NCBI RefSeq assembly: GCF_000143415.4
Contig: NW_003314309.1
Coordinates: forward strand, 489,459-553,458
Direction: 5' to 3'
Source: Selaginella moellendorffii
Taxonomy: Eukaryota > Plantae > Lycopodiophyta
DNA length: 64,000 nucleotides
Program-made: the position numbers and the translations under genes
Part shown: positions 6,340-62,999 of the stretch, in pieces
Numbering within the stretch: position 1 is the first letter of the stretch
Layout: each line of letters starts with the position of its first letter
The notes under the pieces: generated by a model
Database searches by the model: none
What the model saw: the letters and a program-made list of their open reading frames with translations, nothing else
Told to the model about the DNA's origin: nothing

Positions 6340-7286
6340 GGTGGGTACGAAGGGAAACAGATCGCTGACGAGTACAAATATTTGGGGCACATAATCCACC
6401 ACACCAAGCCAAGTCGAAGGGGTCCGGGCTAGGAGGCTAGCACGCCTATTATGCAATGCAATCAGACTGTAGAAAAGCATGAGTAACAAGTTGGGAGGCG
6501 AAGGAGATATATTTTCTCACGAAAATAACCACAGTTGCACTCTATGGGTCAGAAATGTGGGGACTTGAACTCTCTAAAAAGCAGTGGGGAAACCTAGAAA
6601 CTATCGCAATGACCTTCATTTCAAACGAACTCAGCATCTCCACCAAAACAGCACTCCCCATACCATATGGCAAACTTGTGGATCAAGCAATTCTTGACTC
6701 TCATCTGCTGGCATGGGAACATGGACAAGGATGGTGGCACGACATAGAGACGTGGACGCACAAGTTTGGCATGGATCTCAACAACATTTTCAATGCACTT
6801 AAAGAGGATCTTGAACAATGGTTGAACAAAGCAATGCACACATGGATACATGCCAAAGAACACTGGACAAAATATCACCTTTATTGCCAGGAGATAAACC
6901 CAGATGAAATGTTCAGACTGAACATCTACAACAAACTTTCAACATGGAGCAGACACACCATCGCCTGGTACTGCACAGGAAACCACAGCCTGATCGAACC
7001 CAGATGCCGCAGACAGGGAAAACCTCCACGACATCTCCAGATCTGCCTGGTCTGCACAGAAGACACAGAGACGGTCAGGCACACACTCAAGGCTTGCCCT
7101 GCCTATGCCAAATTCTGCTCCCCAGACATCAACTGGGATGCCAAAACATACATAATCCTTGCAAACAAGGAGACAACCTCATCCCCTGCCAATTACCTGA
7201 AACGCATAGAGCTGCGATGGCAAATACATGTCACACATGCAATGGAGGCAGAGACCTTGAACGGCCGAGGAAAAAAAGACGGGTAG
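6340..7286 (+). mobile_element. 5'-truncated non-LTR retrotransposon (RTE/RTEX-like): RT thumb and C-terminal Cys/His domain
   Basis: EYKYLG motif at about 6369-6387. ORF 6555-7286 contains TGNHSL..E..R...R...C.VC..DTETVRHTL..CPAY, typical of LINE ORF2 C-termini. Confidence 0.7.
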
Positions 7287-13488: not shown

Positions 13489-15294
13489 TTACCTTTGTTT
13501 TCGTTCAACCTTCAGCCTCCTGATCGGCCAACACTCGTTACTGTTTGAGCTTTCTTCTTCCTCGTCTGTCGTCACCGCTCTGCATTGCAACTCTATGTAT
13601 TTGTTCTTGTGTGATCTTACTTCATGCACCAGATGCTCTGAGTCTCGTATGTACGATTTGAGCCTGCTTTTGTACTTGGCACCTGAGGCGTTGCGTTGCA
13701 GCTTGTCTTGTGATTCTTTTTGTAAGCTTTCCAGCGCGGCAAGTATTGCCTCGTGATGGTCTCTTGTGCCCATAGCATTCAGCTGCTTGTCCTCGTCTAA
13801 TATATCTCCAATTGGTGAGTTCAGGTAATAGCCATCTGGAACTGCATCCGGAGGATCTCCAATCGTGAGGACGTTTTTGAGCGCTATGAGGTAATTGCAT
13901 ATCTTCTTGAAAGTTGGCCGGATTTCCGGTCTGCCGTGCCAGCAACACTGCAAAAACAGAGATAGGCACCTTGGAAAGCCAGGTGGTAGAATTGGTCTGA
14001 GATTGTTGTCCTTAACCCGGAGGAAAAATCCGGCTGCCGGGTAAGAGCAGCCTTCGAATGGCACCTTGCCGGTGAAGATCTCGTAGCAAGTCATACCAAA
14101 GCTGTAAACGTCTGCCTTTTTCCTGCTTGCATTCTTTTCTTCGTTCCATATTTCTGGAGCCATGAAGTTTACTGTCCCGCCCCTCCTGACTGGGACCTTT
14201 GACTGTGCACTTTTGAGTTTCGTCTCTGATAGTCCAAAGTCACTGAGCTTGGCAGTGTAAAAGCTGCATTCGTTGCTTGGAAGATTGATAAGTATGTTGG
14301 CTGTCTTGAGATCAAGGTGGCTCACGTCGTTTGCGTGAAGAAACTCCATGCCTCTGGCAATCTGGAGAACGATATCGACAGCCACGTCCATCTCGAAGGG
14401 AGGTCCTGGTTTGCTCTGTACTATGTCCTTGATGAGATTGTGGAGGTCGCGCTTCATTCTTTCCATGAGGAGAACGTAAGGACCTTCCTTGGATCGCTGG
14501 GTATAGCCTACCATTTTCACTATGTTGGGGTGCCTCAGATAAAACAGAGCTCGTAGCTCTCTTTCCGAGCTCGGGTCCTGCACAGCATAAGCTTTGGTCG
14601 CGACCGTCCTTCCCAGCCATGTAGCCTCGTAGACGTATGCGTAGGATCCTTCTCCAATGAGCTTACCTTGAATCACTTTCTCTGGATTGCGAAACAGGTA
14701 CTTTGGCAGCGGGAGCTCCTGCGAACGCTTGTTCTCCACCTCCGCCAAGAGGTACCTCCCGAGCTCGATCTTGTTCACGTCGGTCTCTTTATCTTCCAAC
14801 TTCGCCGCTACTCTTTTCAGATCTTCCCGGTCCATGTTCGCTGCTGCCTTGAGCTCCTGCCTCTCCGACTCCGGCCACTCCCAAGCATGCGGTGCAGGCC
14901 TCAACGTACCTTTACTCACCGAGACCTTGAGCTTTAGAAAGTAGACGCACTGACTAAGCTCTTGCAGGATGATTTGGAACTTGAGCTTGTGCTCCTTCTT
15001 GAGCACGGCGTGCCAGAGCCAGTCGGGGCTGGAGCAGCGGTGGAGTAAAAACTGTGCGCGGTCCATGACTCTGTCAATCTGGGCGATGGTCGGCTTGCAG
15101 TCCTCCAGGAGCCCCGGTTCGAAGTCGATCATATCCAGCAGGTACTTGTGTAGCCTCTCCACTCTCTCAATCAGGTAGGCGCACTGCTTGGGTGCCAATT
15201 TTCTAACCTCGCTTTTACTATCGCAGATCCTCTTGGCCTTGTTTAGGACCGGAGGCAAGCTTGCGACGACCACTACTTCGCTGCCCATGTCCAC
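13489..15294 (-). CDS. Intronless TKL-group protein kinase with N-terminal helical-bundle (MLKL-N/HeLo/MCA-like) domain
   Basis: 601-aa ORF. Kinase motifs: GEGSYA, VATK, HPNIV, HLDLKTANIL, DFG, GTVNFMAPE, DVYSFG, CW..RP.F. The N-terminal about 130 aa are helical (KQCAYLIERVERL...AQFLLHRCS...F..ILQEL). Confidence 0.9.
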   Translation of the reverse strand: MDMGSEVVVVASLPPVLNKAKRICDSKSEVRKLAPKQCAYLIERVERLHKYLLDMIDFEPGLLEDCKPTIAQIDRVMDRAQFLLHRCSSPDWLWHAVLKKEHKLKFQIILQELSQCVYFLKLKVSVSKGTLRPAPHAWEWPESERQELKAAANMDREDLKRVAAKLEDKETDVNKIELGRYLLAEVENKRSQELPLPKYLFRNPEKVIQGKLIGEGSYAYVYEATWLGRTVATKAYAVQDPSSERELRALFYLRHPNIVKMVGYTQRSKEGPYVLLMERMKRDLHNLIKDIVQSKPGPPFEMDVAVDIVLQIARGMEFLHANDVSHLDLKTANILINLPSNECSFYTAKLSDFGLSETKLKSAQSKVPVRRGGTVNFMAPEIWNEEKNASRKKADVYSFGMTCYEIFTGKVPFEGCSYPAAGFFLRVKDNNLRPILPPGFPRCLSLFLQCCWHGRPEIRPTFKKICNYLIALKNVLTIGDPPDAVPDGYYLNSPIGDILDEDKQLNAMGTRDHHEAILAALESLQKESQDKLQRNASGAKYKSRLKSYIRDSEHLVHEVRSHKNKYIELQCRAVTTDEEEESSNSNECWPIRRLKVERKQR

Positions 15295-48599: not shown

Positions 48600-50683
48600 T
48601 CTCACTCTTTGCCGATGCGACGCTCGAGTTCGAGGACCGGGTTTCGGCTGAGTTTCAAGATAGTACGAGGCTGGTCACCTCAGATGTGGCTGAGGCGACT
48701 GAGTCTGCTCGGACACAGTGAGTCTGCCAAGGTCAGAACGAAACACCTTGGTCATTCTGTAACTTGACAGATAATCTATGCAAGAGAGTGGCTGAAAGAT
48801 GCGACCATAGGCAGAGAGCAGACGAAGTATCTTGTTATGGAAGCTATGCGTGGTGGCTGCCAGGTAATGTTTCTTACGTTTAGCTAGCTGAGATTTGTTT
48901 TTTGCTTTCCAGGGCCACCGTGCTGAGCTTAGTGCTGTTAGAGTCGCTAAAGCATTGGCTGCCATGGATGGTCGTGATGAAGCTGGTGTTGACGACCTGA
49001 AGAAGGCGGTAGGCTTGCGATGTACATGTTGAACGTGAGTGAAACCGTTGTGTTTGTTGTTCAGGTGGAGCTTGCGATTCTACCTCCGCTCTACACTGCA
49101 AGATGCGCCTGAACAGCAAGATAACCAGAGACCGCCACCACCTCCACCACCTCAGAATCAGCAAGAAGAGCAGGAGAAGGACGATGAAGTACGTCAGTAT
49201 CGAAACTTTGTATTCCACTAAACAATTTCTATCCAACACAGGAAGATGACGAGGATGAAAGAGGAGTTTATTTTCGACGCTGAAGGAGGACTTGTAGACG
49301 CTCAGCTGCTCTCCTCTGCACAGCAAGCCCAGCGGCGGAAGGGGAAAGCTGGACGAGCGAAGAATGTGATGTTCTCAGGAGATAGAGGACGATATATCAA
49401 ACCGATGCTTCCGAAGGTGATCTGAGAAGCTACTCCGTCTGAAGGTTGACAATCATCGCTACTGTTGCAGGTCCAGTTAAACGGCTAGCTGTGGATGCTA
49501 CACTCAGAGCCCGCGGCCCCGTATCAAAAGCTCCGGAGACAACGAGCCATTGAGCAAGGTCAATCCAGAAAGGTGTACGTCGAGCAGTCGGACCTGCGGG
49601 CCAAAAGAATGGCTCGTAAAGCTGGAGCTTTGGTATGTTTTCTAGTGTATCTTTCAACATGTCGTTGCTTGATGTTGGAAATATTATGCAGGTGATTTTT
49701 GTGGTTGATGCGAGTGGAAGCATGGCACTTAGTCGTATGAACAATGCAAAAGGTGCAGCCATGCAACTTCTTGCTGATAGCTACACGAGCCGTGATCAGG
49801 TGAACATCCGGTTCAAGCTCTCTGAAAGAGTATCTTAGTGATGTGGTTCTGCAGGTTTCCATCATCCCTTTCAGAGGTGATTCGGCTGAAGTTCTTCTGC
49901 CACCATCTCGGTCCATTGCAATGGCCAGAAAGAGATTGGAACGATTACCTTGTGGTGGTGGCTCCCCGTTGGCTCATGGTCTTACCACGGTACGTGTTGT
50001 TGTCAACTTACGTCCACTGTAGGCTGTACGAGTGGGGCTTAATGCTGAGAAAAGCAGTGATGTCGGACGGGTTATGATCGTTGCCATCACCGATGGTCGA
50101 GCTGATGGATCGCTCAAGAAATCCCAGATGCTCCCAGACCTTCGCAACAGGAATTGAAGGTGCAACTTGAGTTCATCTACATCTTGATTTTTTACTGTCT
50201 GAGAACAGGAGGAGATCAGAGAAATTGCTGGGAAGGTTTACAAAACGAAGTTTATTTCCACCGGATTTGCCACGTCCACTGTAGGCTGTACGAGTGGGGC
50301 TTAATGCTGAGAAAAGCGGTGATGTCGGACGAGTTATGATCGTTGCCATCACCGATGGTCGAGCTGATGGATCGCTCAAGAAATCCACTGGGGACCCCCA
50401 GATGCTCCCAGACCTTCGCAACAGGAATTGAAGGTACAACTTCAGTTTATCTACATCTTGATTTTTTACTGTCTGAGAACAGGGGGAGATCAGAGAAATT
50501 GCTGGGAAGATTTACAAAACGAAGTTTATTTCCACCGGATTTGCCAAAGAAATTGCTAAACTTGAGCTGCATCTTTGAAAAAAACCTGTGGTTTCAGGAA
50601 AATACTACTATCTTCCAAATGCTTCTGACGCGGTCGTGTCAGCTGCTACGAAGGAAGCTCTCACGGATTTGAAAGCCAAGTAA
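48600..50683 (+). pseudogene. CHLD: 5'-truncated, intron-containing Mg-chelatase subunit D pseudogene
   Basis: GCQ|GHRAEL, Pro/acidic linker, [29 protein letters not shown], v[36 protein letters not shown]. No N-terminal AAA exons. Frameshifts at about 49260 and 49511, in-exon deletions and an internal duplication. Confidence 0.88.
50011..50546 (+). repeat. About 262-274 bp tandem duplication of CHLD exon-intron-exon segment
   Basis: CGTCCACTGTAGGCTGTACGAGTGGGG starts at 50011 and 50273; both units end CCGGATTTGCCA. Confidence 0.9.
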
Positions 50684-52753: not shown

Positions 52754-52781
52754 CCCTAAACCCTAAACCCTAAACCCTAAA
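52754..52781 (+). repeat. Interstitial telomeric repeat (CCCTAAA)4
   Basis: ccctaaaccctaaaccctaaaccctaaa at the gene/retroelement boundary. Confidence 0.9.
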
Positions 52782-53465
52782 ACCGGAGTTCGGTTGGAAA
52801 TGCACTATGATGCTTCGCAATGGTGGGGAATTGCGAAAGGGTGATTTTTGGAACTGGTGGCAGGGATGTACTGTCACACAGGTGGTAGGTGGCTGCAGCG
52901 ACATCGTAGCACTTCCACGCCATTTGACGTTGAGGATGGTGGGTGGATTCTGTGGTGGTTGACGCGAGGTCATGCGAGGTCTCTTTGGAGACTTCCTCTT
53001 TGTGGTGCTTCACGAGGGGGTTTGTGCGGACAGCCCAAGTTCTTTCGAAGATGGGGCCCATTTCGAAGTGTTCTCGAGCACCTCTTTGCTTCACGGTGGA
53101 GGGATGCAAGCTCCAGCTAGACGAGTCGGACGAAGTTCACGCCCCGAAGGTAGAGTTGCAACTGCGGACTACACTTTGTGGATGCAACGACGGGATTCAC
53201 TTGGCATCTTCAGGTTCGAGTGGAGGAGTGCCTCGGGACAAGCTTCGAGTGTCTCGGGGCATAGCAGGTCCTGGGAGGCGAGACGAGTGGTCCACGAGCG
53301 ACGCCGGATCATTGTGCTTAAGTGAGTGAGCTTCGCTAGAGAGTTTCTCGAGAGTCCGCTCTCACCCTCACTGACACCGTATGGGTTAAGTGAGGGATCT
53401 ATCTTTGTACTTTTGCCACACATGGTGGTCCCTTGGGGACGATGGGGAAATGGATATACCAGTTA
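52782..53465 (+). mobile_element. Non-autonomous LINE-tailed element, copy 1 (5'-truncated)
   Basis: Homologous to 54490-54975 joined to 55911-56028. Ends ..GGGGACGATGGGGA..CCAGTTA, followed by CTCGAACCGGGGACCTC. Confidence 0.7.
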
Positions 53466-53482
53466 CTCGAACCGGGGACCTC

Positions 53483-56028
53483 CTCATTCTCGCCCTAAGT
53501 TTTTGAGGAGAGAGCTCGAAGGCGCTAGAGAGAGAGTGTGGGAAAGAGGGAGGGAGCGAGCGTCCAGCGCGGCACAAGCATCGCAGACCGCAGCAGCAAC
53601 ACACGGAGCTCGTCTCCCTCCTCTTTCTCCTCTTTTCCCTCGCTCTCGGTCGGTTTTTTCAATTTCTCCCAAACGGCTGGGAGAAAATTCGATTCCTTCG
53701 ACAGGGGGCTTCTAGGAGTGGAGCTCCACATCCTCCTAGAAGGCCGCAGCGAGATCTGCCACGGATCTGGAGATCTCGCTGGCCCTAGGTCGTCACTGAT
53801 TTTTAGGGTTCTTCGGCGGCAGCTAGGGTTTTTCGGGGCTTGGAAGATCTGGAGGAGTGGAGAGGGCCGTCAGCAACACCACAGCTGCAACAGCAACACG
53901 CAGATCACTCAGCTCTCCTCTCCTCCTCTTCTTTTCGCTTCTCTTGGTTCACAGTTTTTTGGGAGCTCATAACTCCTAAACGGCTGGGAATTTTTTCACC
54001 AAAATTCACAGGTGGATAGTTGGGATGAGATTCACATCCTCCCAAAAGCGCAGCTCCAAATTCTTCGCGGTTTCAGAGATCTCGCCTGCCCTAACTCGCG
54101 GCTAGGGTTAGGGTTCTTGGCTGGCGGCTAGGGCTTCTGTCCTAACTGCGGTTAGGGCAGGACTTAGGGTGGCGGCGGGATCTTCGATCTGGCCACTCTA
54201 AGTGTCAAGGATCTTCGTCACATGTGGTTGGTACGGCAGCAACATGGTGGAAACGCGGCCGTTGCTGGTCTCGCAGCTTCGAGCGGGATTTCTCGCCTTA
54301 GGTCTGGCCATGCAAGGTGGTGGCTAAGGTATGGAGAGCGTGGGGCTGCATGCGTCGAAGGTTCTTGGCGACTTGTGTCATGGAAACATGACCAAGTCAT
54401 GAGAACTTTGTCACTGGTGGAGGATAATCTGGGACGACGTCTCGGCATAGCGAAGAATCCACAGTGGATGGACGTGGAAGAAATGACGGGCGGATTTTTG
54501 GAACTAGTGGCAGGGATGTGCTGCCACACGTTGGACCGCTTGGCTGCGACGAGGTTGGGCTGGATTGACGTGGAGTCATCCAAGAATTTCCCACGGGATC
54601 TTCTCTCCGTGGTGCTTTTCGAGGGGGTTCGCGCGGACAGCCTTGGTTCCTTCGAAGATCGTGTCTTCTTGGACCGGGCACATTTCGAAGTGCTCTATAG
54701 CACCTTTTGCCTCACGGTGGAGGGATGCACGCTCCAACTGCGCGTTGGAGGAAGATCACGCCCCACAGGTAGAGCTGCACGACAGAGTGGCTTCATGGAA
54801 ACCAGAGATGGGACCGGCTTGGCATTTTCGCGTCCGAGTGGAGGAGTGCCTCGAGGCAGGCTTCGAGTGTCTCGGGGCGTAGCAGGTGGCTCTAGTCACG
54901 CGGTGGAGTCACCTGGGAGGCGAGGGGAGTGATCCACGAGCGGCGCCGGATCATCGTGCTCGAGTGAGTGAGTTTTGTCAAGACTACCTCTTGGCTTGCA
55001 GCGCAGGGGGGCCTCCCGGTGGGAACTCGCTTCGCAAAGACGACAGCCAGACAATGCTCGGAGTGTAGAGGGGAAGAGACAGTGGGCCATCTCCTCTGGG
55101 AGTGCAGAGTTGCTCGGGCCTTCTGGCACCAAGTCGTGAGGATCGCTGGATCCTTCAACACCTCGGACGTCTTCAAAGTCCGCGCGGGGGATGTTGCACA
55201 GTGGTTCGCAGAGGCACGAGGAGTTCCAGGTGGCTCAGCCTGGAGGCGATTGGTGTGTGTGGGCCGTCACGGGAAGGGCTTCCGCGCCCAATGGGAAGAG
55301 TTCAGCGACACGGCAGACCTGACAGTGTGGCAGGTGCTCGGACACACCAGGTGGGCAGCCATGAGGGCTGTAGGAGTGCAGACCCTTTGGGAGGCCCGAA
55401 ACAAACATCGGTTCGAGAGTGTTACAGCTAGAGTTTGCGCGCTTATGGCAAACTGGTGGCGGATGCTGCTAGCCTCTATACGGATGGGGCTCACCCTGCG
55501 ACAAAAGAGTGACAACGCTTCTCAGGCTCTGGTTGCTAGGGATGGGTATGGACTCGGACCAAGGTATACGATGGAAGTGGCGTCTTCCAGCCCGCTTTGC
55601 AGCCTCAGCACGGAGAGGCGATGTACAGCTGGATCAAGTGAGGCGCACTCAGGGGAACGAGGCTCCGGTGCTTCTCCTTCACGCCCTGCCAGGCCCACAG
55701 CCAGAAGGCGGAAGCCACGTCAGTTCCACCAGCAGCTCCGCTCCAGAAGTTCACGCATGAGTAGCTACCACTTGCGCAGTTAGGAGGCTTCACTAGATAG
55801 AGCACCCCCCCCACCGACCCGATGAGGTGTCAGGGGGGGAACATTTTTTGTACCAAGTGTTGGTCCCTATGAGGAAAATAAAACCCAGAGTTACTCGAGT
55901 GAGTGAGTTTCGTAGAGAGTTTCTCGAGAGTGCGCTATCACCCTCACTGACACTGTATGGGTTAGGTGAGGGATCCATCTTTGTACCTTTGCAAAGGGGA
56001 CGATGGGGATAATAAAACATACACGTTA
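53483..56028 (+). mobile_element. Non-autonomous LINE-tailed element, copy 2 (about 1.6 kb, interrupted by a LINE fragment)
   Basis: Flanked by a 17-bp TSD YTCGAACCGGGGACCTC (53466-53482 and 56029-56045). Ends in GTTA. The 5' part has two diverged about 300-bp subrepeats. Confidence 0.75.
54976..55893 (+). mobile_element. L1/Tx1-like LINE 3' fragment (zf-RVT region plus 3'UTR)
   Basis: TSWLAAQGGLPVG..C.EC..EETV.HLLWEC, LWEARNK.RF. Perfect 17-bp TSD CTCGAGTGAGTGAGTTT at 54959-54975 and 55894-55910. Confidence 0.9.
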
Positions 56029-56097
56029 TTCGAACCGGGGACCTCTCGGCTAGGGGGTTCTCTTAAGTTTGTGTGCTAGCCAAGTGGCCTCAACCCA
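56029..56097 (-). other. Degenerate tRNA-like (Pol III A/B-box, SINE-head-like) sequence; apparent insertion target
   Basis: Minus strand reads GGGTTGAGGCCACTTGGCTAGCAC...GAGAGGTCCCCGGTTCGAA: weak A-box, variable loop/T-stem and GGTTCGA T-loop, cut off by the inserted element. Confidence 0.5.
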
Positions 56098-56919
56098 CAT
56101 CCTTGAAATTTATCTATCTCCACTTAGACTTATTGGAGAAATGGCCCGTGGGATTAGTGCCGATTAGCAATGTGATTAGGAGGGGAGTTAAGCCTCTTCG
56201 CACAGCAATCCTTCCCCATCATTCGCCACTAGGGCTAGGGTTTCGGGCACTGTTTTTGGGGCGCTGAGCGTGGAGGGGATATTGGATTGTCGTGGGAGTT
56301 ACACCGTTGGAAAGCCCTCGTCAAGCCACCCACTTCCACAGAGACGGATCTCGATTCCGACTCACGCTGCGCTCGTGCCATCCGGTGGGGACGGGAACAC
56401 GGTTTCCCTTGCACCTCGAGATCCGTGAGGGCACTGGAGCCGTGCTTCGCGCCGCAGTGGCAGGGCACAGTCTCAGACGTGGCGGTGCAGACGGATTGGG
56501 ATTTCGTTGCATGGCTAGTGTGCTGGGGTGGCATGTGTGTGCAGGGGAATTGGGCGGTAGATGCTGGTGGGGCTTTGGGAATGCAACGTGTTATGTACCG
56601 TTAGAAAGCCCGCATCAAGGGGACCATGCCGGTGTAGTCACCTTGCCCGTGTGCTGCCGCCCCATCTCAATGCCCTGTCGAAAACGGCACACGCTATTAT
56701 CCACTGGACGATGGATGCCACACTTTGTGTGAAATTGTTTTCGGCTGTACCGGGGCCTGGGGGCGTCGAGGGGAACGCGGCGGTGTGCCCCGTGCGGGAA
56801 GCTCGCGCACGGTTTGCGAGGAAACGGCCCGAGAGCGTCTCTACGAAGCATATTCCCATTATTCCTTAATAAATTAAGTGGAAAATAAAAAAATAGCAAA
56901 AGGCAATGGGCTCCGGTTT

Positions 56920-59900
56920 GGTCAGGCCAGATTGCACTCATCCCGAAGCGAGGGGACCTGCAGGAGTTGAGGAATTGGCGACCGATCACGATGTTGAACA
57001 CGGTCTATAAGATCTTCGCAAAAGCCCTGGTGCTTCGGCTGCAAGAGGTCATGCCCAGCATCATCCGGGAACAGCAGACAGGATTTGTACCAGGCAGGCA
57101 GATTGCGGAGAACATATGGACGTACCTTCTGGCCCAGCGATGGTTCAAGGAGACAGAGCAACAGATAGTAGCGTGGCTGCTGGACTTCGAGAAGGCTTAT
57201 GACCGCGTCGATTGGGAGTTCCTCGAGGAATGCCTGCAGAAGATTGGTTTCCCCTCGGCGCTTGTCGCGTGAATAGCTCTACTATACCGGGGATCGACAA
57301 GCACAGTCGTGATCAATGGAGAAGTTGGCCCCAGCTTCACGCTGGGAAGATCAGTCCGCCAGGGGTGTCCCCTCGCCCCATACCTCTTCTTGGTGGTCGC
57401 TGAAGCATTGGGGACGTTCCTTCATGAGGGCGGAGTTCGAGGAGTTGCTCTACCGACCAGCAGGACTCAGATGATGGATCTGAGGGGAGGGCCCAGAGAG
57501 TTGCTGGATGGAGCTTTCGCGGATGACACTACCCTTTTCCTGCTAGCAACAAGAGAGAACTTGGATCTGGCGCGTCAACTCCTGGAGACGTACAACCTGG
57601 CCTCGGGAGCAGCAATCAACTGGAATAAGTCCGTGGGGTGAACTGGAGCAACGCAAACGTGGAAGCCTGGGGACGTGAGGTTGGGTTTCAATGGCTGCCG
57701 CCTCAGGAGAGTACACACTATCTCAGCCTTCAGGTGGGACAAGTCTTCAAGGCCTCCATGCAGGATGACTACTTGCTCGCACGAGTCCGAGCAACGATCC
57801 AGCGCTGGACCCCACGCAAACTCGGGCTCCCGGCGAGGGTGGTGGTAGCCCGAAGTATAATCCTGCCAGGCATATGGTATCACGTTGCCATATGGCCAGT
57901 GCTAGAGGCCACTTTAAGGAAAATCCGCAGCATGGTAAGAGTGTATTTGTGAGGTGAACCAGACCAGAACAATGTCTAAGGTAGCGTGGCGGTACACAAC
58001 GCGACCTAGGGACTTCGGTGGACTGGGTTTAATTGATCCCAGCGACATGGCGAAAGCACTCAGGTACAAAGTCATCTTGTTGGCTCTGCAGCCAGGTGCC
58101 CAGCCATGGAAACTCCTGATGAGAGAAGGGCTCTTGGCTATAAGGCCCAAACATCACCCTGGGAACCAGACTCGAGATGGATGTTCGCAGAAGGTGCAAC
58201 GCAGGTGGTTGGAGGAGGTCCATTGATGCAGGGCATCCACAGACTGTGGCGAGCGTTTCCCCTCCAACGTGTGATCCCAGCAAGGGCAGAAGAGTGGCTG
58301 CAACAGCCTCTCTTCTTCAACCCCCTCTTTACCAGCGGCAACACTACGTTAGGAAGGGAGAACCACTTCACCATATGGAGACGACTTCACCGAAACGGGC
58401 TGCGAACGGTTAAGGATCTCCTAAAGGTGGTGGATCGGATTGAACAGGTGACACTGGTGAACCTACGGAGTTATGATCCCGGGCAACGACCGCGCCTCAG
58501 AGAGGATGCGCTCCGACTCATGAGAGCAGTCACAGCAGCGCGAGGAGAGAAGTGGCCTCGACGCCGCATCTTGGCAGGGGACTTTATCCTGGTCCAACCA
58601 GGGAACGTGGAGGGTCAGAAGCTCATGGATCTGGGAGAGTGGACACAAGACTGCACAGAGCCGATAGTGCCGTGGGACCCGCAGAAAGAGCTCGACGTCT
58701 GGTTCGTGGACTCCCCGACAGGCAACATGGGATGGAGATATAAGATAGAGCAGGGGGGCATATTAGAGCCGTCAGGCGACTTGCAGCTCATGCCCAGGGT
58801 AACGAGAAGCGAAGTCAAAGGCCGCATTAGAGTGATGCGACACTCCACTAAGGCGCTACACATAGTTGACACTGTTCGACAGCGTGAGGGCCCGGTGGTG
58901 TTGCTTTGGTGGCGGCAGGCTCTGGTGGAGGACTTAGACTGGGATCTGGCAATGTGGCGACGAGAGGGGAACGACTTCTTCTCGTACGAAGTCCAGGAAG
59001 CTTGCAGCAGCATCAGGACGACAAGAGAGCTGGCGCTGGGCGAAATTCCGAAGCTATGGCGAACCTGGATCGCGCAAGGAGTTGGGCCAGAGAGAGTGAT
59101 CGAGAACACACTGGAACTGTGGAAGCTCACCATCCCAGAGAAAGCAAAAGCGACGTCCTGGCTGGCAGCGCAAAGGGGCCTCCCAGTTGGCTGTAGATTC
59201 GCGGAGCCAGTAGCCAGACAATGCACGGAATGCGGAGTGGTCGAGACGGTGGCGCATGTCCTGTGGGAGTGCGACGTGGCAAAGGAACTCTGGATGCAGG
59301 TTATCAGGATGTCTCACTCTTTCGACACGAGGGAAGATTTCGAGGTTCGCCTAGAGGACGTGACCCAATGGTTTGAAGAGGCGAGGGGCATCCCGAGCGG
59401 AGCAACGTGGAGACGAGTCATGTGCTTTGGACGGCATGGCCGGGGCATGCATACCGGATGGGACGAAGTTGGAGCTGAGAGAGGTTCCCCTGTTTGGCAA
59501 GTGCTGGGAAAGGACAGGTGGGGGATACTGCGCGCAGCGGGCGTCCAGGTGTTGTGGGAGGCTCGCAACAAGATGCGCTTCGATGGGACAGAGGCCCGTG
59601 TATCAGCCATGGTAGCAAACTGGTGGAGGATGACTCTGGCGGCAGTGAGAGTAAAGTACGCCCTGCTTCGGACAGGAGGGAAGGAACAACGGCTCAAATC
59701 GTTTATTCAACACTGGACCCCCGGGCTGGGAACATTGGAAGATGCCGGAGTCAAGTGGAAGTGGTGTATGCCCGATCGGTTCGCAGCATCAGCCCGTAGA
59801 GGAGACATCAGATTGGACCGCCTCCGGCTGAATCGAAGGAACGCTGCCTCGTTGCTCCTACTGCCTGCAGCGAGTAACCAAGTCGGACATGGACACTCTC

Positions 59901-60016
59901 TTTAGAGTTAGTCTCGCTCACACCTTTATGTGGCCGTTTGCGGCACAAAGAGGGAGTTTTGACTTGTAATTATTGCACGTATAGGTGGGACGATGGGGAA
60001 TAAAACATAACAGTTA
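56920..60016 (+). mobile_element. 5'-truncated L1/Tx1-like LINE (RT plus zf-RVT), disrupted by stops and frameshifts
   Basis: LIPK..D...LRNWRPITMLN..YKIFAK; QTGFVPGR.I; LDFEKAYDRVDW; SVRQGCPLAPYLF; FADDT; INWNKS; GGLGLID; C.EC..ETV.H.LWEC. 3'UTR ends GGGACGATGGGGAATAAAACATAACAGTTA. Confidence 0.93.
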
Positions 60017-61129
60017 GGGCTTTTTGCCCTAACTGAATGCTAGGGCTCTGCCAGCCAACGGTTAGGGCAGGACTTAGGGTGGTGGCGGGAGCTTCGATCC
60101 AGCCACTCTAAGGGTTAGGGATCTTTGGTGTGAGTAGCTCGGCACGGCAGCAACACGGTGGAAACGCGACGGTTGCTGGTCTCGCAGCTTCGAGCGGGAC
60201 TTCTCGCCTTAGGTCGGGCCATGCAAAGTGGTGACTAAGGTACGGAGAGCGTGGGGCTGCATGTGCTGAAGATTCCTAGTGACTTGCGTTGTGGAAACAC
60301 GACCAAGTCAGGGTAACTTTGTTTCCGGTGGAGGATAGCTCGGGACGGCATCCCGACAGAGCGAAGTGTCCACAGTGGATGGACAGGGAAGAGACTATGG
60401 GCACATTTTTGGATCTAGTGACACGGAAGTGCTGTCACAAAGGGGGGCCAGTGGCGGATGGCCGAGTTGGTTCGCTCGCGGAGGGGATCCCACATGGTTC
60501 TTGCTTCAGGGCTAGTCCTTTGAGGAGGTTTGTGGAGGCTTGCAAGTCTTGTGATTGTCGCGAGGCTGGCAACGGGGGCTCGTATATCTTTGAAGGGGGG
60601 CCAGCGCACTTGTCTAGTGTGGGAGGCAAGGTAGCACGCTCAAGCTTAGAGCTGGAGGAGGCTCACACCTTGCTTGTTCTACGCCTTGGAGTTTGTTCGC
60701 AATGGGCACCGACTTCGTGCTGGAAGTACACTAGGGAGGTAGGCACTCCAAGACATGACCACACGTCTTGGGGCGTAACAGGTGGCTTCAGCTTGCGCAA
60801 TGGAGTCACCTTGGAGGCAAGTGACCCATGAGCTACGCCGGGTCATCGTGCTCGAGTTGGACCACTTGGCTGCGACGACGTCGAGCTAGATCGACATGGT
60901 GTTCGTCTGGCTTGACATCTTTGTTACCAAGTGGAGGAGTGGCGAGGCGAGTGATCCATATGCGGCGCCGGATCATCGTGCTCGAGTGAGTGAGTTTCGC
61001 ATAGAGTCTCTCAAGAGTGCGCTCTTACCCTCACTGACACCGTATGGGTTAAGTGAGGGATCTATCTCTTGTACTTTTGCCACACGTGGTGGTCCCTTGG
61101 GGACGATGGGGAAATGGATATACCAGTTA
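60017..61129 (+). mobile_element. Non-autonomous LINE-tailed element, copy 3
   Basis: Homologous to 54130-54975 and 55911-56028. Contains the empty site GCTCGAGTGAGTGAGTTTCG at about 60980. Ends CCAGTTA. Confidence 0.75.
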
Positions 61130-61146
61130 CTCGAACCAGGGACCTG

Positions 61147-62451
61147 TCCCCTACCAAGAACCAGGGGTGGAGGTATCGCATAGGCCCGGATGGAACACTG
61201 GCACAGGTTGACGACCTACAGTCCATGCCTTGGCTCCAGAGCGATGAAGTCATCGGGCGCATTCGGGTGGTGAGACACACCACCAAAAGCGTCCAGGTTG
61301 TGAGCACGACAGCGCAGAGGAAAGGACCAGGGGACCTCGTGTGGTGGCGGCAACAACTCATAGAGGACCTGGATTGGGACCCAGCCATGTGGAGCAGGGA
61401 GAGTGGCGACTTCTTTGACTACGAGGTTAGAGAGGCTCAAACGGGCCTTATGATGACGTGGGAACTGGCGAGAGGGGAGCTCCCCAAGCTGTGGAGGATC
61501 TGGATCGCCAGAGGAGTGGAACCGGAGCGCGTCATTGAGAGCACCGACGACTTCTGGAAGCTTACGATCCCGGAGAAGGTGAAGGCGACGTCTTGGCTTG
61601 CGGCACAAGGTGGGCTGCCGGTAGGTAGCCGCTTCCAGGAGGAACCGCAGCATAAGTGCAGGGAGTGTGGCGGCCTGGAAACCACTGCACACATGCTGTG
61701 GGAGTGCGGGGTGGCCAAGGAAGTGTGGAGGCAGGTTACTCGGGTCACCACATCCTTCAGCGCACAGGGCGAGTTTGAAGTGCGCCAGGGAGACGTACTT
61801 CAATGGTTCGAGGACGCATGAGGGGCTCCTACGGGACCTGCATGGAGAAGGATAGTCTGCTTCAGTAGACAAGGGAAAGGGCTACGAACCCGGTGGGATG
61901 AAGGGGGCGCGGAGATTGGCTGCTCGGTATGGCAGGCCCTGGGTCACGAGCGATGGGCGATCATGAGGGCGTCTGGAGTACAGGCTATATGGGAGGCACG
62001 CAACAAGCACCGGTTCGACGGCGTGCCAGCTAGCGTCTCAGCGATCATGGCAGGATGGTGGAGGCTGAGTCTGGCCGCAGTCAGGCTGAAGGATACACTT
62101 CTCAGAGAGAAAGGAAAGGCCCCGCAGATAGCAGCTTGGCGACGACTATGGCTGCCTGGCATGGGCATAGAGGGAAGCAAGGAGGTGTGCTGGTACTGGA
62201 GACTACCAGCCCGCTACGAAGCAGCAGCTCGTGTAGGAGATGCGCGACTGAACCGGTGGAGGGGCCAACGATCCAGTACGCCGCAAGACCCGCCACCCAG
62301 GTTGAGGATCGGGATCGCATCGGATCTAAATAGTAGTGAGTCTTAGAGGGTCAGCCCAGCTCCCGGAAAGACTGTATAAGGGACTTGGGCTCCCCTCCAT
62401 GTAACACGTGGTGGTCCCTTGGGGACGATGGAGAAATGGAAAAGCTAGTTA
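61147..62451 (+). mobile_element. L1/Tx1-like LINE 3' fragment (third subfamily)
   Basis: SPT.N.GWRY..., EDLDWD..MW, TSWLAAQGGLPVG, zf-RVT, IWEARNKHRF. 17-bp TSD CTCGAACCRGGGACCTG at 61130-61146 and 62452-62468. Confidence 0.9.
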
Positions 62452-62468
62452 CTCGAACCGGGGACCTG

Positions 62469-62657
62469 GGGCGGATTTTTGGAACTAGTGGCAAGGATGT
62501 GCTGCCACATGGTTGGGCCGCTTGGCTGCGACGAGGTCGGGCTGGATTGACGTGGAGTCATCCAAGAATTTCCCACAGGATCTTCTCTCCGTGGTGCTTT
62601 TTGAGGGGGTTCGCGCGGACAGCCTTGGTTCCTTCGAAGATCGGGTCTTCTAGGACC
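62469..62657 (+). mobile_element. Fragment of non-autonomous element, copy 4
   Basis: Near-identical to 54489-54677; starts immediately after the target motif. Confidence 0.75.
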
Positions 62658-62999
62658 GATGAAAGTAATTGGGGCATTAGCAATAGTGAATGGGCAGCAC
62701 CTTTGGAAGTGACTGAATGGTGAATGTATAAAAGGGAATGGATCAAAATGTAGCTATAGATGTGTAGAAAAGGGTGATGTAAAAGGAAATTCAGAACCTT
62801 GAGAAAGACTTAGAGAAAACACAAGCTTTGATGATCAGCAGGATCAATATAACCTTGAGGCCAGAAACCTAGGTGAATGTCAACTGAAACGAGACCATAC
62901 AACCTAGAAAAGTACAGAGAAAAGTGAAAGAACAAAGTAGAAAAAGAAAACAAAGAAAAGGAAAGGTAAGAAAAAAAGAAGATTCATTGTAAAGTAAAT

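Follow-up and report, generated by a model that had tools for sequence, protein, structure and literature searches.

L1-like LINE inserts stacked at a tRNA variable-loop/T-arm motif in Selaginella moellendorffii

How can retrotransposon copies that differ widely in sequence come to stand at the same nucleotide? This question is raised by an array at positions 52754 to 62658 of a 64,000-nucleotide stretch of the Selaginella moellendorffii scaffold GL377613.1 (GCA_000143415.2), which we refer to as the window and which provides all coordinates below. The array contains 7 inserts in the same orientation (+), of which 3 are fragments of the second open reading frame (ORF2) of L1-type long interspersed nuclear elements (LINEs), here called C, D, and E, and 4 are copies of a non-coding partner, here called A, B, B', and B''. 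Each insert is truncated at its 5' end, at a point that differs among all of them, and the inserts are antisense to a motif from the variable loop and T-arm of tRNAs, which is duplicated over 16 to 17 bp, and have a common tail. We consider it probable that the array is the work of a sequence-specific, L1-like LINE lineage of Selaginella of the apurinic/apyrimidinic endonuclease (APE) type, which recognizes the variable-loop/T-arm segment (box B) and whose 16- to 17-bp duplications regenerate the target.

On the + strand, the order is (CCCTAAA)4, A, target, B with C inside, target, a single-copy stretch of 885 bp, E, B', target, D, target, and B''. An earlier reading made from the sequence alone (the sequence-only reading) had described the array as nested. 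Its inference that the duplications regenerate the target stands, but the layout is mostly tandem, and the only truly nested insertion is that of C within B.

52754-52781 (+): telomere-type tract (CCCTAAA)4, adjoining the 5' end of insert A; neither a target copy nor an upstream target flank survives
52782-53465 (+): insert A, 5'-truncated copy of the non-coding partner, 76% identity to B, tail end GTTA
53466-53482 (+): target copy 1, left duplication of B
53483-54958 (+): 5' part of insert B, non-coding partner, with two 5' monomers of about 300 bp; multicopy; longest ORF without protein homologue
54959-54975 (+): left member of the perfect 17-bp pair at the secondary CTCGAG site within B
54976-55893 (+): insert C, 3' fragment of an L1-type ORF2 (zf-RVT) with tail, nested in B
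55894-55910 (+): right copy of the 17-bp duplication of C
55911-56028 (+): 3' part of insert B, with hairpin and GGGACGATG...GTTA tail
56029-56045 (+): target copy 2, right duplication of B; its minus strand is the box-B/T-arm motif
56046-56930 (strand not assigned): single-copy stretch, probably the original target flank alternatively a sequence that E captured at its 5' end; no tRNA
56931-60016 (+): insert E, L1-type ORF2 from the start of the reverse transcriptase (RT) to zf-RVT, with tail; no endonuclease part, and no target after the tail in this haplotype
60017-61129 (+): insert B', 5'-truncated and internally rearranged partner, 82% identity to B; holds the empty secondary site at 60981-60997
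61130-61146 (+): target copy 3, left duplication of D
61147-62451 (+): insert D, 3' fragment of an L1-type ORF2 (zf-RVT) with tail
62452-62468 (+): target copy 4, right duplication of D
62469-62658 (+): insert B'', internal partner piece of 190 bp, 95% identity to B; 5'-truncated at the target, 3' side broken off

Six surviving 3' ends terminate in GTTA without poly(A) (53465, 55893, 56028, 60016, 61129, and 62451), and 5 of them run directly into YTCGA, precisely as the sequence-only reading had reported. The string GTTAYTCGA occurs 5 times in the window versus 0.68 expected, and TCGAACCRGGGACCT occurs 4 times, always on the + strand, versus 0.01 expected. Since the target copies go back to one or two original sites, the counts cannot be treated as independent events; they show that one insertion after another was made at the same nucleotide. 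The sequence YTCGAACCRGGGACCT, which adjoins 4 of the 6 tail ends, is the reverse complement of a canonical tRNA variable-loop/T-arm, as had been proposed, and the target reads GAGGTCCCCGGTTCGAR on the minus strand. The shorter YTCGA, named as the target in the sequence-only reading, does not suffice, because the + strand of the window has 92 YTCGAR sites and the insertions used only 2 sequence contexts. All three of the suggested 17-bp duplications were recovered, one of which is perfect (54959/55894, around C), while the pairs around B (53466/56029) and D (61130/62452) have one transition mismatch each. The 17th base agrees within each flanking pair, being C/C around B and G/G around D. The tail end of C lies within its duplication at a CTCGAG site of the partner, a secondary site whose empty form, which had been noticed near 60980, was located at 60981-60997 in B' and also in contigs of other runs.

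The comparison of the motif with tRNAs was made in phage contigs. There, 32 of 51 exact matches to the 16-mer lay inside tRNAs called by ARAGORN, at the variable loop/T-arm, and most of the others resembled the 3' halves of tRNAs; the 16-mer is thus a canonical part of tRNAs and a box B of RNA polymerase III (Pol III). The sequence-only reading also saw the rest of a tRNA-like head at 56046-56097, which did not hold. This segment was neither called as a tRNA by ARAGORN, which gave only noise at lowered thresholds, nor matched in Rfam beyond chance hairpin matches, and it folds as a single long hairpin rather than a cloverleaf. On the minus strand at about 56029-56091, a weak A-box-like run is followed by the hairpin and then by box B, which lies 55 nt after the A-box run. 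A contig from independent runs covers 56004-56381 at single-copy depth. The flank after target copy 2 is at most a tRNA-derived cassette, an origin that we somewhat favour; a sequence captured at the 5' end of E is a possible but doubtful source, and a decayed tRNA gene is slightly less likely still. The original target is more likely to have been a tRNA-derived cassette than a working tRNA gene.

What the LINEs and the partner have in common is confined to the last 120 bases or so, which comprise a hairpin, the GGGACGATG motif, an A-rich stretch, and GTTA. Some pairs in the common hairpin are compensatory. C lacks the GGGACGATG motif in the window, and contigs carry 8 extra bases at 55868 that restore it. 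It was also noted that the last 70 nt of A (53396-53465) and B' (61059-61129) are nearly identical, while the 120 nt before them differ at about 13 positions, and that D matches the last 64 nt of these tails at 90%, which suggests tail swapping or strong constraint.

The tail of E (60016) joins B' directly, with no target between them, and no 5' duplication for E was found upstream. In sequencing run X2, two contigs have similar depths (101 and 94): one, 3,403 nt long, starts in the sequence ahead of E and has 55 bases of tail plus target at its far end, and the other links the target to partner position 54101. The simplest reading of these matches is that the window haplotype probably lost the target of E when about 47 nt were deleted at a TA microhomology, and that another allele would keep it intact.

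For the analysis of the coding inserts, in-frame stops were read as X and the ORF2 pieces were searched separately. The zf-RVT domain was found in C, D, and E, and RVT_1 in both pieces of E, which carries in-frame stops and frameshifts. The closest solved structure to the RT of the nearest relative is human L1 ORF2 (E-value 5e-24, versus 1e-7 for R2). With an L1-type RT in E, a C-terminal zinc finger, 5' truncation, duplications, and no long terminal repeats, C, D, and E are fragments of L1-group non-LTR retrotransposons, in agreement with the sequence-only reading. Two canonical traits of plant L1s, a 3' poly(A) and unspecific insertion, are absent from the array, where 6 tails end in GTTA at fixed sites. 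The amino acid identities among C, D, and E are 53% to 56%, and about 0.62 of the third codon positions differ versus about 0.26 of the second. They are therefore separate, once-active subfamilies and not duplicates, and the inserts at the same nucleotide are very different from each other, with ORF2 sequences that show a pattern of purifying selection and partner copies that are 76% to 95% identical. The sequence-only reading was right about the three divergent subfamilies but not about their sharing of one behaviour, since only D is directly flanked by the 16-mer, while C occupies the secondary site and the tail of E has no target behind it in this haplotype.

The six ends had also been ascribed to one LINE system. 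The tail is indeed common, but those at 53465, 56028, and 61129 end the partner and not an ORF2. With C removed, the partner is 1,611 bp long, its head consists of two 300-bp monomers, and it is multicopy, with a contig depth of roughly 10 to 40 times that of the flank. Its longest ORF (236 amino acids) has no protein homologue, and no hammerhead core was found in it. A tRNA-derived short interspersed nuclear element (SINE) was ruled out, given the length of 1.6 kb, the head of 300-bp monomers, and the lack of a tRNA or Rfam match. The partner, which shares only the tail with the LINEs, reaches the same target nucleotide. In a contig from run X4, the last 11 bases of the B tail are followed by unrelated sequence and then by a partner head. 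Elsewhere in the genome, partner heads, corresponding to 53483-53508 of the window, have CAGCGATCTCGCCGGATT in front of them, in one case immediately behind a B-type tail end, and this sequence is either the partner's true 5' end or another target of 17 bp. Within B' (60851-60902), the sequence jumps at CTCGAG back to an upstream partner segment, a joint that contigs of other copies also contain; this rearrangement at the secondary site has therefore been inherited.

To which elements is the lineage related? Protein searches identified one close Selaginella relative (locus L089), which has lost its tail, and more distant ones. The RT phylogeny was inferred from 51 rows, a subsample of Selaginella, fern, and metagenome hits with no Tx1 or Zepp references, and is drawn at its midpoint without a true root. 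In this tree, the window family and a family in 25S ribosomal DNA (rDNA) are sisters with support values of 98/96, beside a group of fern and metagenome L1s. The RT, for which the sequence-only reading had proposed a placement in a tree, has its nearest relatives among L1s of Selaginella, fern, and metagenome origin.

The RTs of the two sister lineages are about 46% to 49% identical. The rDNA lineage is inserted antisense in 25S rDNA at a single site of 16 to 17 bp, ACAAAGTCGGACTAGAG, with 5 junctions at two loci (L091:9955 and L092:8793, 9007, 11274, and 13348), which are stacked head to tail in L092, and its tails end without poly(A). L091 keeps an APE domain along with ORF1-like, RT, and zinc-finger remnants, and this APE-bearing sister lineage has the same insertion geometry. 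An off-target copy of the rDNA lineage (L090:9249) has a flank that starts with the first 6 target bases, just as the site of C keeps 5, and no upstream duplicate was found for this copy. Both relatives outside Selaginella with readable ends (L151 and L155) end in poly(A), and no tRNA target was seen in the metagenome relatives L144-L151 and L154-L155. A search of metagenome contigs for the tail-plus-target pattern gave 88 matches, which were rejected as chance, because none of the 80 loci fetched resembled the array.

Under established target-primed reverse transcription, the endonuclease would make the first nick on the tRNA-sense strand, just 3' of GGTTCGAR. The RT would bind the structured 3' tail and begin copying at ...GTTA without poly(A), possibly helped by pairing of a read-through RNA with the nicked strand, and a second nick would be made 16 to 17 nt away. 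As the motif is duplicated, each insertion leaves two fresh targets, and later copies therefore stack head to tail. On one occasion, a 5-base match (CTCGA) inside the partner was used as a secondary site. The exact ends without poly(A) and the secondary matches of 5 to 6 bases fit either a core endonuclease site or pairing between read-through RNA and primer. Pairing of that kind raises the efficiency of R2Ol (PMC6530143), and specificity is carried by the endonuclease domains in R1Bm, TRAS1, and Tx1L (PMC1919474).

Several observations weigh against a box-B-specific lineage. Locally, the target preference is seen as 4 junctions at one nucleotide of the 16-mer, but all target copies lie in one array and may go back to one or two original sites, and the specificity may be a local one only. 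The window holds no intact target with both flanks. All copies of the C/D/E family are truncated before the APE position, and protein searches for relatives found no copy of this family with an endonuclease; the full-length copy with an APE that the sequence-only reading hoped for was not recovered, the domain being seen only in the sister lineage. In the consensus fold of the tail, the covariation term is net unfavourable. Finally, the partner is not confined to the 16-mer, because a B-type tail end has a different flank and heads elsewhere follow CTCGCCGGATT.

Could the 16-mer instead belong to the elements as their 3' end, taken from a tRNA on a single occasion, with Zepp-like insertion at the ends of earlier copies and no independent host target? 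The window shows neither an empty target nor a true tRNA, every copy of the 16-mer directly follows a tail, and read-through RNA would blur the border between end and target. However, C ends in GTTA within a perfect 17-bp duplication of other sequence, the B-type tail end in the X4 contig lacks the 16-mer, and the 17th base matches within each pair, which together favour a host target over an element end; moreover, the equivalent 16- to 17-mer of the sister lineage is plainly host rDNA. We regard a captured end as improbable. Somewhat more improbable is a mere preference for the short YTCGAR, in which the array would stem from a few events of local re-insertion or of RT template jumping between RNAs. 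The single locus and orientation, the 5 bases in common at the site of C, and the internal mosaic of B' with its jump at CTCGAG would suit this explanation, but not the use of 2 contexts among 92 sites, the wide variation of the inserts in sequence and decay, or the whole target copy at 4 junctions, which template jumping would not write.

A segmental duplication or assembly artefact, which would account for the long block common to B and B' and for the absence of the region from 48610 onwards at the locus of the other haplotype, is largely refuted, in line with the sequence-only reading. The proteins of C, D, and E are only 53% to 56% identical, all truncation points are different, contigs from independent sequencing runs span three junctions (B-tail/target/flank, the 5' end of C, and target/B''), and, at the locus of a single-exon transporter gene of the window that has an exact match on record, the public scaffold is identical to the window over 21,461 bases. 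The other haplotype (GL377578.1) matches the window only up to 48610 and diverges before the array, so there is no empty site to be read there.

The L1-type elements TRE5 and TRE3 of Dictyostelium are tied to tRNA genes, as the Selaginella array is to its tRNA-like motif, but they integrate next to the gene, some way off and through protein contact, rather than at a fixed nucleotide within the T-loop. Target-specific APE-type LINEs have been placed in the Tx1 and R1 clades (PMC4640811). The Tx1 clade, which has been called an animal clade, includes Tx1L, Keno, Kibi, Koshi, and Tx1-Mar with SINEU passengers (PMC4494074). The Selaginella lineage resembles it in the L1-group RT with a C-terminal zinc finger, the fixed target in a multicopy sequence, the related families with different targets, and the non-autonomous passengers at the same site, but it is a lycophyte lineage with plant-type L1s as its nearest RT relatives and a box-B/T-arm target. 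The Selaginella element works in the manner of a Tx1-type element and is at most a candidate member of the clade. The R1 clade (R1Bm, SART1, and TRAS1; PMC1919474) likewise combines APE-type specificity with a fixed duplication, and the sister lineage targets large-subunit rDNA as R1 does; however, R1 elements are insect elements of another clade with other targets, and the Selaginella elements insert antisense to theirs.

Among green-lineage L1s, Zepp builds nested arrays in green algae, and Zepp and ZeppL form arrays of 5'-truncated 3' ends by insertion into existing copies (PMC8226300). Zepp inserts into its own copies and has a poly(A) end (PMC3472496), whereas the Selaginella units are separated by a tRNA-like 16-mer. 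A Zepp-like, self-nesting L1 was rejected for the array, where C alone is nested, in the partner, and poly(A) is absent. In flowering plants, 224 of 233 L1 families end in poly(A); the stringent monocot L1 with ZmSINE2/3 also combines a plant L1 and a passenger with a common structured 3' end, but no target specificity was reported for it (PMC3472496). NeSL-1_TV, LIN15_SM, and LIN25_SM use tRNA genes as a multicopy niche, but are LINEs with a restriction-like endonuclease (PMC4640811), and so does Dada, which consists of DNA transposons with sites clustered at the anticodon and A box rather than box B (PMC8869645). In the same genus, the Penelope-like PLE-X elements are precisely targeted to a multicopy RNA gene, but have a Penelope-type RT, no identified endonuclease, and a 28S rDNA target (PMC8557442). 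Targeting of rDNA in plants was first reported for Penelope-like elements, which are also the sole published case for Selaginella in the literature searched (PMC8557442).

In the literature searched, which did not extend to Repbase or to unpublished annotation that may exist, target-specific L1-type insertion of this kind was described only in animals, and no description for plant LINEs was found, as the sequence-only reading had surmised. A plant L1 lineage with a specificity of 16 to 17 bp would mean that the trait has arisen one more time. The way in which an APE domain changes target can be tested directly on the two sister lineages, which have unrelated targets within a single small genome. 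The common tail supplies a short cis signal for cargo, a point of interest where genes are to be inserted at specific sites in plants. Evenly balanced, in our view, is the broader proposal of an independent radiation of sequence-specific APE LINEs in Selaginella, a land plant, parallel to Tx1 and R1 in animals, with sister lineages that moved between 25S rDNA and the Pol III box B as targets and a non-coding passenger that, by swapping tails, rides different lineages to different targets.

Some features of the surroundings were also noted. The four telomere repeats at 52754-52781 lie at an internal position, where they cap the truncated 5' end of A, and may represent a healed break or a promoter-type telo tract. 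The segment 48610-52750, which is missing from the locus of the other haplotype, lies under a broken, magnesium chelatase D-like gene model that has AAA-lid and VWA domains, and contains a 274-bp tandem duplication at 50010-50546. Further upstream, 6555-7286 is an unrelated, old LINE fragment that matches zf-RVT weakly and lacks the GGGACGATG tail, and 13489-15294 on the minus strand is a single-ORF kinase with a weak match to the MLKL N-terminal domain.

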